NCBI RefSeq assembly: GCF_000150275.1
Contig: NW_002060945.1
Span: 1,368,199-1,432,198 of the forward strand
Reading direction: 5' to 3'
From: Trichoplax adhaerens
Lineage: Eukaryota; Animalia; Placozoa
DNA length: 64,000 nt
A model generated the notes under the pieces. It had not been told where the DNA came from and did not search any database. It saw nothing but the letters and a program-made list of their open reading frames with translations. The position numbers and the translations under genes are program-made. Shown piece after piece: positions 31,968 to 35,422 of this stretch; the stretch's first letter is position 1; each line of letters begins with the position of its first letter.

Positions 31968-34900
31968 ATGAGTTACAACAACGAACCCAAACGACGACCA
32001 GATTTTACAGTCAATCAACAGCAGCCATTCAATGCTGAACCACCTTGTGATGCCTTAATTCGGAATTATGTCACACCTAACGACTATTTCTACGTACGAA
32101 ATCATGCCCCAGTACCTTCTCTACCAGGAGAATCTTACCGGTAAGAATTCATGGGATATTGTACAAGTTAGGAGACTATCTTTCACCCGATCTGCAGCGC
32201 CAGGCACAAATCGATGGCTTCGATGCAGGCGAGCTCTATTCAGCCTCTACTGCCGATCACTATCGACGAGTAGAAAGCTATCCAAATCTGTTAAGGTTAT
32301 AATTTGTCCATCATTTATGTTCGAGAAAAGGAAGGATTGACTAAAACATCATAAATGATGCAAGCCTTGAATTGACACTACTTTATATGTGTTTTCATCT
32401 TTCTGGATGGACATAAACACAGCGACGTATCTGACTTATTCTATGCCTGACAGACAGCAACTTTTGCATACCTTAAAACGGATAAAATGAGGACAGTAGT
32501 CTAAATTTTATAGACAATCAGTTTATAACTGTAATTCCTACATAATTGACTTAAGGGAAAACGAATGATTTATTGGAAAATCAGAAATGAAGCAACTCTT
32601 TAATGGACGCTGCTTTATGTGTACTATCGTGTACATCTGTCTTTCATCGTTCTTAGTTAACGTAGAGAAACTCAACGATCTTCTACTGTAGCCTAACCCT
32701 AACTCATCAAGGCAGCAACTTTGGCTTACCCTACTGATTTAAAAGTGATAAAAGGATGATCGTGATCCCTATTTTAGTTTGTATATCGCTTATTCTCAGT
32801 GGCTCTGCTACAAAAATTACAATACTGTAGTTTAAGTATAAGTTCTACGCTTTCATTCTGGACATGCCAAACATAAGAAAGTGATCATGTTGATGCATAA
32901 ATAGCAATAGTAAATATAGGAATCGCCATCATCAATAATCTATTGCATAATTAATACCCGGTGCGAGGATACCATTTAGTAAAGACATGTTAATTTCCGG
33001 GACCAAGTATTCAATAGCTGCTCAGAAACTACATTAACCAGTTATATGCGTACAGTAGTTGATGTAATCATTAACCTTGCAAATATTAATAAGTTGATTG
33101 CATTATAGTTAGCGTATTGTGAGATTATGATACTTCCAATGTACTGAAATTTAAAATCATACATATTCGTAAATTAAATATAAATTGAAGACCAATCAAT
33201 CTATAAACAATATAGTCGATTCAACTAGAATACAGTCTCACAAACTCTGTTATTAATAAATAATTTGCTGCTATACACGGATTCTACATCACCAGTAGTC
33301 CCATCGAAAATAGTACATTGAATTAAAGTCTAATAAATATCCTTTAAATTTATATTCTTACAGGTTAATGATTGGTGGCGACGTTCCACAGCCTATTAGT
33401 CTTTCATTATCAGAATTAAAATCTCAATTCCCAAAAGTTCAGGTCATGGCAACTTTAATGGTAAGTTAATCTACGTTGATAAAGTTCCTAGTATGTCACT
33501 TGCACCTTGAAAGCAATTGTTGAAATCTTCAGAATTCCGCTTAATGGTTGATAGCCGTAGACGTGTATAATTATTAATTATTCATAGTAAAGCAATCTAT
33601 CAAACGGGACGCCTAACAGGGTATTGTCTATATTGCAACATAGTGCGCTGGCAATAGAAGAGATGAACTCAATAAAATCAAAACTGTTAAGGTAAAAAAT
33701 CACGGAATTAATAAACTGTAGCCAAAGCAATCATTGACCTTTTATACGGCTACTTACGTAATTGTAGAATATATACATACATGCTAGCACGGACAGAAGC
33801 TGATATTTAATTTAAAACGTCCGGTATACCTACAGTACTTAATGAACTTCTTACCTATAGGGTGTAACATGGGGACCGGCTGCAATTAGCAATGGCATTT
33901 GGGGCGGTGTACCCCTACGTTTGGTCTTACATGCGGCTGGAATTATCGAGGTTAGATACTACTGTTGCTATTGGCTTTACCAGTATTAGCCTACTAAGAA
34001 CATTCTTGATGAATGGACATGTTAATTAATTAATTCATTGCTATGCGTAGTCCAATTTTAGGCAATATCACGTCTGCTTTGAGGGATTTGATATTTGCAA
34101 AGACAATACTGGATATGGATCTTCGATACCGATACCAAAGGCCATGTAAATAAATTAAAATAACCCCGTTGTTTCATACTTTAACCGTATTACCAACCTT
34201 TAAACTTATATGGTTGCATTTCAACCTGCTTAGGGATCCGCAAGGAGATGTGTTGCTCGCTTACGAGGTTCATCATGTTACAATTTTCTTTCGTCTTACA
34301 CTTTTTGTCGGTGAAACTAACCTTTGTTTATTGTCCAAATGACTTACCTGTGACAGATGAATGGAGAAGAATTACCAAGAGATCATGGCTATCCTCTACG
34401 GGTAGTAGTTCCAGGATATATCGGCGCAAGGTTAGCATCTTTTATGCTCGCATGTCTAATAGCTTACTGTAAGTAGCGTTTTCATTGAATGTCACTTAGA
34501 GTTGGCTATTAATTTCTTTATTTCCCAGGAGTGTCAAATGGTTAAAATCTATTGTCGTGCAAAAGGAAGAATCTACAAATTATTTTCAACGCCGAGATTA
34601 CAAACTATTTCTTCCACAAGTATGCTGCGTATACATATTAATAACCATTATGTTTGAAGAAAAACTTTGTTAATATAGCGTCGCAAACTTAAATAATCAT
34701 TTTAGGTAAACTGGGATAACGTTGATCAATGGTGGGATAAGAGTCCTCCAATTCAGGAGTTGTCTGTTCAGGCTGCTATTCTAGAACCAAAGAATGGAGC
34801 AGCTATAGATACCGGTAGCCCATACGCTATTAAGGGCTATGCATTATCTAATGGGCACAGGTTAGCCAGAAATTATTCAAACGCCTGCTATAGTTTCAAA

Positions 34901-35422
34901 TACCCACAATATTGTACAATATTTATGATCATGTACCTCGATCATAACGTAGTACATTTTCTTAATAGTGTTTTTGAACTTTTGAAGACTGTAAATGATT
35001 GCATGTATAATTTTAAATGATAAGTTGAACTTTCCACGTTCAATATCTGATAGGATTGCCAGAGTGGACGTCTCTTTAGACAACGGCGTTACGTGGGAGC
35101 CTGCCACAACGATAAATGGTGAAATAAAGGATAATACTAATAGATATTGGAGTTGGTTTCTTTGGACATACACCGTTAGATCTATGCCTTCCCCATGCCG
35201 TATCGTCTGTCGAGCGTGTAAGTTCACTCATATCAAGATACTGTAGTTCTAAAATACGTTCACTTTAATAAGACAATAATTTACAATCAATCTAATCGAT
35301 TAATTTTAGGGGACTATGCATCAAATAGCATGCCTGGAGATGCACCTTCAATATGGAATTTGCGTGGAGTCATGAATAATAGTTGGCATCGAATCGACGT
35401 TGTGAGTAAAAGCAAAATTTAG
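31968..35422 (+). CDS. Sulfite oxidase-family molybdoenzyme lacking the cytochrome b5 domain (Moco and dimerisation domains only), 11 exons, about 377 aa, ending in SKI
   Basis: Exons 31968-32140, 33364-33460, 33644-33691, 33861-33950, 34051-34145, 34234-34267, 34357-34430, 34529-34619, 34706-34860, 35054-35217, 35310-35422 (1134 nt, in frame). Motifs PFNAEPP, FYVRNH, CAGNRR (Mo-ligating Cys), [58 protein letters not shown]. Confidence 0.93.

Follow-up and report, generated by a model that had tools for sequence, protein, structure and literature searches.

A heme-less sulfite oxidase with a candidate peroxisomal targeting signal in the placozoan Trichoplax adhaerens

The sulfite oxidase (SO) of animals is a heme and molybdenum enzyme of the mitochondrial intermembrane space, and the SO of plants, which resides in peroxisomes, differs from all other eukaryotic molybdenum enzymes in having no second redox centre; the Arabidopsis enzyme (At-SOX) is heme-less and is targeted to peroxisomes via its C-terminal tripeptide SNL, and a 2023 review treats the heme-less enzyme as the plant form (PMC10574614). 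No description of an animal SO that is heme-less or located in peroxisomes was found in the literature searched, most subscription journals lying outside its coverage. Here, we analyse a gene of the placozoan Trichoplax adhaerens located at positions 31968–35422 (+ strand) of a stretch of 64,000 nucleotides (RefSeq assembly GCF_000150275.1, contig NW_002060945.1, positions 1,368,199 to 1,432,198 of the forward strand; hereafter “the window”, with a G+C content of 33%). Judging from its sequence, the encoded protein is made of the molybdenum cofactor (Moco) domain and the dimerisation domain alone, and thus lacks the cytochrome b5 (b5) heme domain of the animal enzyme (SUOX). Our overall reading, to which we give a probability of about 0.62, is that this gene encodes the sole SO of Trichoplax and that the enzyme belongs to an ancient heme-less type, being, as we infer, peroxisomal and O2-linked.

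Among the described systems, plant SO (At-SOX, PDB 1OGP) has the same architecture, i.e., Moco and dimerisation domains only, a length of ~380–390 residues, no heme and no presequence. The N-termini of the two proteins are alignable (Trichoplax residue 2 corresponding to At-SOX residue 9), both proteins end in a tripeptide resembling type 1 peroxisomal targeting signals (PTS1), while both stand on the same side of the phylogenetic split described below; at the gene level, one intron is common to plants and Trichoplax, in phase 0 and directly before the cysteine that binds the molybdenum. Nevertheless, the Trichoplax enzyme is only ~48–51% identical to plant SO, its score against At-SOX is lower than that against chicken SO (339 vs. 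391 bits), its tail is SKI instead of SNL or SKL, and it features a two-residue insertion (DQWW) otherwise present only in the animal heme-less enzymes compared. Furthermore, peroxisomal location and O2 use have been demonstrated for the plant enzyme, whereas they are deduced for Trichoplax. A D-x-C-K signature is common to the heme-less enzymes compared in our intron alignment.

Closer counterparts are the proteins labelled “sulfite oxidase-like” in echinoderms and in Priapulus (P0160, P0164, P0165, P0168, P0269, P0159), for which no experimental study was found in the literature searched. These are heme-less too, of the same length and with the same start, but their tails (SRF, AKF, SKV and SKY; AKL in crinoids) differ from SKI, all but the crinoid one being less canonical, and Echinodermata also possess a b5-type SUOX (Patiria P0379), of which no equivalent was found in Trichoplax. 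As for the animal mitochondrial SUOX (chicken, PDB 1SOX; human), it shares with the Trichoplax enzyme the catalytic core, including the conserved Cys, three Arg, Trp and Tyr, and its gene in amphioxus shares two introns, but the Trichoplax protein has neither b5 heme domain, hinge nor presequence and branches on the opposite side of the split. Finally, the SorA-type sulfite dehydrogenase of Starkeya (PDB 2BLF) also has a Moco/dimerisation subunit that is heme-less and comparable in size; it is, however, far more distant (151 bits), periplasmic and associated with a separate cytochrome c subunit, whereas the Trichoplax gene is interrupted by ten spliceosomal introns and has orthologues in animals.

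The gene consists of 11 exons separated by 10 introns, each with GT–AG ends (Table 1), and the joined exons yield a frame of 1134 bases (377 codons, no internal stop) that opens at 31968 and closes after VVSKSKI at 35422. RNA evidence came from assembled library contigs of four runs belonging to two studies (three runs and one run, respectively). All ten intron junctions are carried by these contigs at exactly the predicted positions, and the two longest contigs (1602 and 1701 nt) extend from 31767 or 31756 through every exon to 35689 or 35777. Full-length contigs begin at 31756 (X17), 31767 (X15) and 31806/31807 (X14, X12) and are colinear with the genome, hence a 5′ untranslated part that includes an in-frame TAA; no upstream exon joined to the SO gene was observed in any of them. 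This TAA, at 31953, is the nearest in-frame stop 5′ of the ATG (15 bases ahead) and no AG lies between the two, so that no coding exon can be spliced ahead of Met1.

Over its 377 residues, the model is identical to a database protein (P0158) deposited for both Trichoplax sp. H2 and T. adhaerens under the automatic name “Sulfite oxidase, mitochondrial”. While the Pfam searches of the gene were run exon by exon, later whole-protein work used this identical P0158. Exons 2–8 match Oxidored_molyb (PF00174) and exons 9–11 match Mo-co_dimer (PF03404), which correspond to residues 46–223 (E-value 1.1e-59) and 249–372 (E-value 1.5e-29) of P0158, respectively. In contrast, Cyt-b5 does not match any exon nor P0158, in spite of an E-value of 7.6e-20 for a cnidarian SUOX scanned alongside. 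Residues 5–371 align with residues 99–462 of chicken SO (E-value 2e-115), and the alignment to Arabidopsis SO covers residues 9–384 of the latter (E-value 3.5e-100); within exon 1, residues 2–52 correspond to Arabidopsis 9–59 and residues 5–57 to chicken 99–151. Based on the chicken alignment, on which positions were counted by hand, Cys91, Arg44, Arg96, Trp110, Tyr228 and Arg359 are the equivalents of chicken Cys185, Arg138, Arg190, Trp204, Tyr322 and Arg450, which indicates that the Mo-ligand cysteine and the sulfite-binding residues are intact in P0158. The first 20 residues contain Glu and Asp, and core homology begins at residue 2, so that a presequence could hardly be accommodated; an N-terminal mitochondrial presequence is thus predicted to be absent, and the “mitochondrial” of the database name is probably wrong.

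A preliminary description of this DNA, made from its letters alone, was accurate as to the frame, which it had placed between an ATG at 31968, right at the start of the Moco domain, and the VVSKSKI end, and the RNA contigs fit both termini without any b5 exon being spliced in. All the motifs that it had quoted (HVCFEG, D-I-C-K, RRDYK and VNWDN) do occur in the encoded protein, while the heme-less and presequence-free architecture that it had proposed is upheld by the Pfam searches, which detect no b5 domain in the protein or in the window, by the RNA contigs and by the N-terminal alignment.

The nearest relatives of P0158 are all heme-less proteins of ~383 residues. Identity to P0158 is highest in the sea urchins Diadema and Lytechinus (62%), followed by crinoids (59–60%), a sea cucumber (59%) and Priapulus (59%), and then by metagenome proteins (53–58%), tardigrades (49–56%), dictyostelids (50–53%), vertebrate b5-SUOX (49–53%) and plant SO (48–51%). 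In a maximum-likelihood tree (62 rows, 380 columns, C-terminal tail excluded, unrooted), with which the quick trees are concordant, heme-less rows are all separated from b5-containing rows with a support of 100/100, and Trichoplax, Priapulus and echinoderms form one group (97/86). Forcing the named animal rows into a single clade, a group that was picked after the quick tree had been seen, costs 212.5 log-likelihood units and is rejected by the approximately unbiased (AU) test (p-AU 1.7e-5). The heme-less clade includes the enzymes of plants, dictyostelids, Nuclearia, early fungi, echinoderms, a priapulid and tardigrades; the heme-less animal SO is therefore not unique to Trichoplax, and its echinoderm, priapulid and tardigrade relatives are already in databases. 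On the other side, b5-type SUOX is found in cnidarians (Acropora, Nematostella, Dendronephthya), molluscs, the brachiopod Lingula, arthropods, vertebrates and the sea star Patiria. Hence, both types occur in animals, and also within Echinodermata, where Patiria miniata has the b5 type (P0379, 588 residues) and urchins, sea cucumbers and crinoids the heme-less one.

Intron positions were compared by mapping deposited proteins exactly onto their genes, then placing the introns on the protein alignment. The ten Trichoplax introns all have a counterpart of same place and phase in Lytechinus, and nine of them have one in Priapulus. Accordingly, exon sizes are nearly superimposable between Trichoplax (173/97/48/90/95/34/74/91/155/164/110) and Lytechinus (176/97/48/90/101/34/74/91/158/170/110). 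The single intron shared with plants was identified in the SO gene of Marchantia, and the two shared with b5-SUOX in that of amphioxus. This map speaks for vertical descent in animals; neither contamination nor a recent transfer is favoured by it, as the preliminary description had argued from the introns and the animal context of the gene.

Taken together, these comparisons favour the retention of an ancient heme-less lineage rather than a recent loss of the b5 domain, because of the 100/100 split, the rejection of the all-animal clade and the complete set of introns in common with a sea urchin. The simplest reading would be that of two old paralogues lost differentially, the b5 type having been lost in Trichoplax. 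Of the two options left side by side by the preliminary description, the tree, the AU test and the introns thus favour retention and disfavour re-evolution through b5 loss. Its label of “plant-type” holds for the architecture and for the clade, but not for the nearest sequence, since chicken SO scores higher than Arabidopsis SO.

Beyond these relatives, a few observations concern the distribution of the two forms. The metagenome heme-less SOs ending in -SKL (P0167, P0170–P0178, P0272–P0275) are encoded by intronless genes and are sister to the Trichoplax/Priapulus/echinoderm group. Two of these genes (L032:4001–5158 for P0176 and L033:4001–5194 for P0274) lie on metagenome contigs of 0.7–1.0 Mb and adjoin SRCR-domain exons, which suggests an animal host genome, perhaps that of a sponge. 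P0220 (384 residues, from a 1.3-kb metagenome contig) has no b5 motif, yet it falls within the arthropod b5-SUOX group in a quick tree, and could correspond to an independent b5 loss or to a truncated gene call. Finally, the SOs of chlorophyte algae (P0193, P0202, P0230) are b5-fused, whereas those of streptophytes (Mesostigma, Klebsormidium, Chara and land plants) are heme-less; therefore, both forms have been sorted within green plants too.

The Trichoplax genome appears to have a single SO, of the heme-less type. Six-frame, exon-level searches of one draft assembly (105.6 Mb, 1414 contigs) showed that PF00174 and PF03404 each match this gene only, and so does the Moco/dimerisation part of a cnidarian b5-SUOX (P0222). 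Cyt-b5 has 17 matches in the genome, none of them in the window (on the same contig, the closest is ~1.25 Mb away), and the b5 part of P0222 matches only the unlinked stand-alone b5 genes. Thus, no separate b5-containing SUOX, the canonical animal form considered in the preliminary description, was found in this assembly by such searches.

Regarding the cellular location, the C-terminal -SKI, which is preceded by a Lys at position -4, fits the pattern [SAC][KRH][LMI]; it is predicted as a weak PTS1 in an inventory of vertebrate peroxisomes, in which Hao1 carries SRI (PMC8919083). The tails of heme-less enzymes are mostly PTS1-like (SKL, AKL, SNL, ARL, SKV, AKF and SRF, in addition to SKI in Trichoplax), with the exception of tardigrades. 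In a filtered count, PTS1-like ends were present in 23 of 33 heme-less enzymes with a relaxed pattern and in 8 of 33 with a strict one, vs. 0 of 99 b5 forms. The Trichoplax genome encodes catalase at two loci and Pex14, and T. adhaerens has been scored with PEX7, a PTS2 (peroxisomal targeting signal 2) thiolase and a PTS1 acyl-CoA oxidase (PMC3178647). The heme-less SOs of tardigrades (P0151, P0154–P0157) end in RDH, VSA, KGA, VAS and KHA, none of which is PTS1-like, and Ramazzottius and Paramacrobiotus have two of them per species.

From these elements, the following scenario can be proposed. Early animals would have carried both the heme-less and the b5-fused types, of which the Trichoplax lineage would have kept the former and lost the latter. 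The folded, cofactor-loaded dimer would be imported into peroxisomes by PEX5 via its C-terminal SKI, a step that we regard as somewhat more probable than not. There, sulfite would be oxidised to sulfate at Mo(VI), and the reduced Mo centre would be reoxidised by O2 without intermediary, as happens in the Arabidopsis enzyme, because no heme is available to relay electrons to cytochrome c. The H2O2 so produced would be removed by peroxisomal catalase; by analogy with the plant enzyme, this reoxidation by O2 followed by catalase clearance seems slightly better than an even bet. In a broader version, which we put forward tentatively and at somewhat less than even odds, early animals possessed a b5-fused mitochondrial SO and a heme-less peroxisomal SO, one of which was later lost in each of various lineages, Trichoplax disposes of all its sulfite via the latter, with O2 reduced to H2O2 and without any link to the respiratory chain, and the same enzyme would be functional to this day in priapulids, in sea urchins, crinoids and sea cucumbers, and probably in sponges, hidden by its “sulfite oxidase-like” names.

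Several points weigh against our overall reading. First, -SKI is predicted to be only a weak PTS1 by animal standards, the tails of the closest orthologues (SRF, AKF, SKY, SKV) are still less canonical, and any PTS1 is missing from the tardigrade relatives. Second, O2 reactivity is carried over from an Arabidopsis enzyme of which the Trichoplax protein has only about half of the residues in common. Third, the tree is unrooted and the group submitted to the AU test was chosen a posteriori. Finally, assembled contigs are blind to rare isoforms and true 5′ ends, while the absence of a second SO gene comes from an exon-by-exon search of a single draft assembly.

The strongest alternative is that the heme-less SO would stay in the cytosol, its SKI being too weak or masked, and pass its electrons to O2 or, in trans, to a separate cytochrome b5 or c. 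It is in line with the weak rating of SKI, with the many stand-alone b5 genes of the Trichoplax genome and with the tardigrades, which have retained the gene, in some cases as two copies, without a PTS1-like end; a cytosolic heme-less SO is therefore possible, and the tardigrade tails point to such an enzyme in that phylum. However, an [SA]-[KR]-hydrophobic end has been kept in the members from placozoans, echinoderms, priapulids, dictyostelids and plants, as opposed to none of the b5 forms, SKI comes after a Lys, and both the peroxisome and the PTS1 machinery are present in Trichoplax. We thus regard a cytosolic enzyme as rather unlikely in this animal, though to be taken seriously.

Another possibility is that the enzyme is mainly devoted in vivo to something other than sulfite detoxification, e.g., the reduction of nitrite to NO or the supply of H2O2 for signalling, H2O2 generation being an alternative raised in the preliminary description. 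As a heme-free Mo domain, vertebrate SO is indeed able to reduce nitrite. Yet all the sulfite-binding residues are conserved, and the gene is the only one found for SO in this genome, so that the sulfite stemming from cysteine and sulfide breakdown would have no other known sink; such a main role is consequently improbable.

At face value, the protein might also be regarded as an ordinary mitochondrial SUOX having undergone a recent, placozoan-specific b5 loss, its likeness to plant SO being convergent. The higher score of chicken SO and the “mitochondrial” of the database name would go in this direction. Nonetheless, the split between heme-less and b5 forms, the likelihood cost of an all-animal clade, the lack of a presequence and the fact that the nearest relatives, from other phyla, are themselves heme-less and have these ten introns make this very improbable. 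As to a truncated gene model, in which a b5-coding 5′ exon would have been missed or would be confined to a minor isoform, it might be invoked because rare variants are lost from contigs, which do not reveal genuine 5′ ends either, and because a possible acceptor (ttttacag) lies within exon 1 at 32003–32010, but it is extremely improbable given the TAA upstream of the ATG without intervening AG, the four assemblies from two studies that are colinear with the genome over 160–210 nt 5′ of the ATG, the lack of any Cyt-b5 match in the window or within ~1.25 Mb, the orthologues of three other phyla that begin at the same point and the conserved YNNEPKRRP segment that splicing into 32011 would remove.

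P0158 and its animal relatives were already deposited under automatic names, and the protein type is known from plants; no new mechanism is revealed here. What the retained heme-less SO of Trichoplax would mean is that this enzyme is not a plant peculiarity but an old eukaryotic lineage still present in several animal phyla, on which at least one animal appears to depend exclusively. It provides a scenario, open to testing, for the sorting of both forms of SO in animal evolution, and it would offer a natural model in which to study O2-linked oxidation of sulfite in an animal. From a practical point of view, it corrects the automatic annotations in which heme-less SOs are named mitochondrial.

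Table 1. Features of the sulfite oxidase gene, in positions of the window.
Feature	Positions	Strand	Remarks
5′ untranslated part of exon 1	31756..31967	+	Genome-colinear; includes in-frame TAA 31953–31955; from RNA-library contigs, which do not fix the true cap site
Exon 1, coding part	31968..32140	+	Met1 to first two bases of codon 58; conserved Moco-domain start, Arg44
Exon 2	33364..33460	+	Moco domain; PF00174 positions 14–43; junctions in RNA contigs
Exon 3	33644..33691	+	First residue is Mo-ligand Cys91 (motif CAGNRR, Arg96); aligned to chicken Cys185, Arg190; junctions in RNA contigs
Exon 4	33861..33950	+	Moco domain, Trp110; Pfam, RNA contigs, chicken alignment
Exon 5	34051..34145	+	Moco domain, D-x-C-K signature; Pfam, RNA contigs
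Exon 6	34234..34267	+	Moco domain; RNA contigs
Exon 7	34357..34430	+	Moco domain core; PF00174, E-value 3e-10; RNA contigs
Exon 8	34529..34619	+	Moco domain end, Tyr228 in RRDYK; Pfam, RNA contigs
Exon 9	34706..34860	+	Dimerisation domain start; PF03404; RNA contigs
Exon 10	35054..35217	+	Dimerisation domain; Pfam, RNA contigs
Exon 11, coding part	35310..35422	+	Dimerisation domain end (Arg359 in WNLRG), tail VVSKSKI, stop TAG
Ser-Lys-Ile codons, candidate PTS1	35411..35419	+	C-terminal tripeptide
3′ untranslated region	35423..35777	+	RNA-library contigs stop at 35654–35777

Upstream of the gene, the repeat DNA mentioned in the preliminary description is real: a 110-nt unit is present in three direct copies, 76–81% alike and spaced by 160 and 144, at 30116–30529, in the spacer between a saposin-like cluster and the SO gene. 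They were overlooked by Tandem Repeats Finder and detected by a second repeat search. In one low-depth contig, from an RNA library of “organism B”, position 30358 is connected to 31642. This joint was rejected as an upstream intron, due to its non-canonical GC..TC ends, its two extra letters and its position in the 110-nt repeat region, which is devoid of any b5 match; it probably reflects a 1.28-kb insertion/deletion difference between strains, spanning 30886–31206. Over the latter interval, several contigs match the genome, then diverge at both ends (loose ends at 30885–30889 and 31204–31210). These loose ends were rejected as SO exons, since their continuations differ among contigs, and the interval is read as a dispersed repeat with copies elsewhere in the genome.

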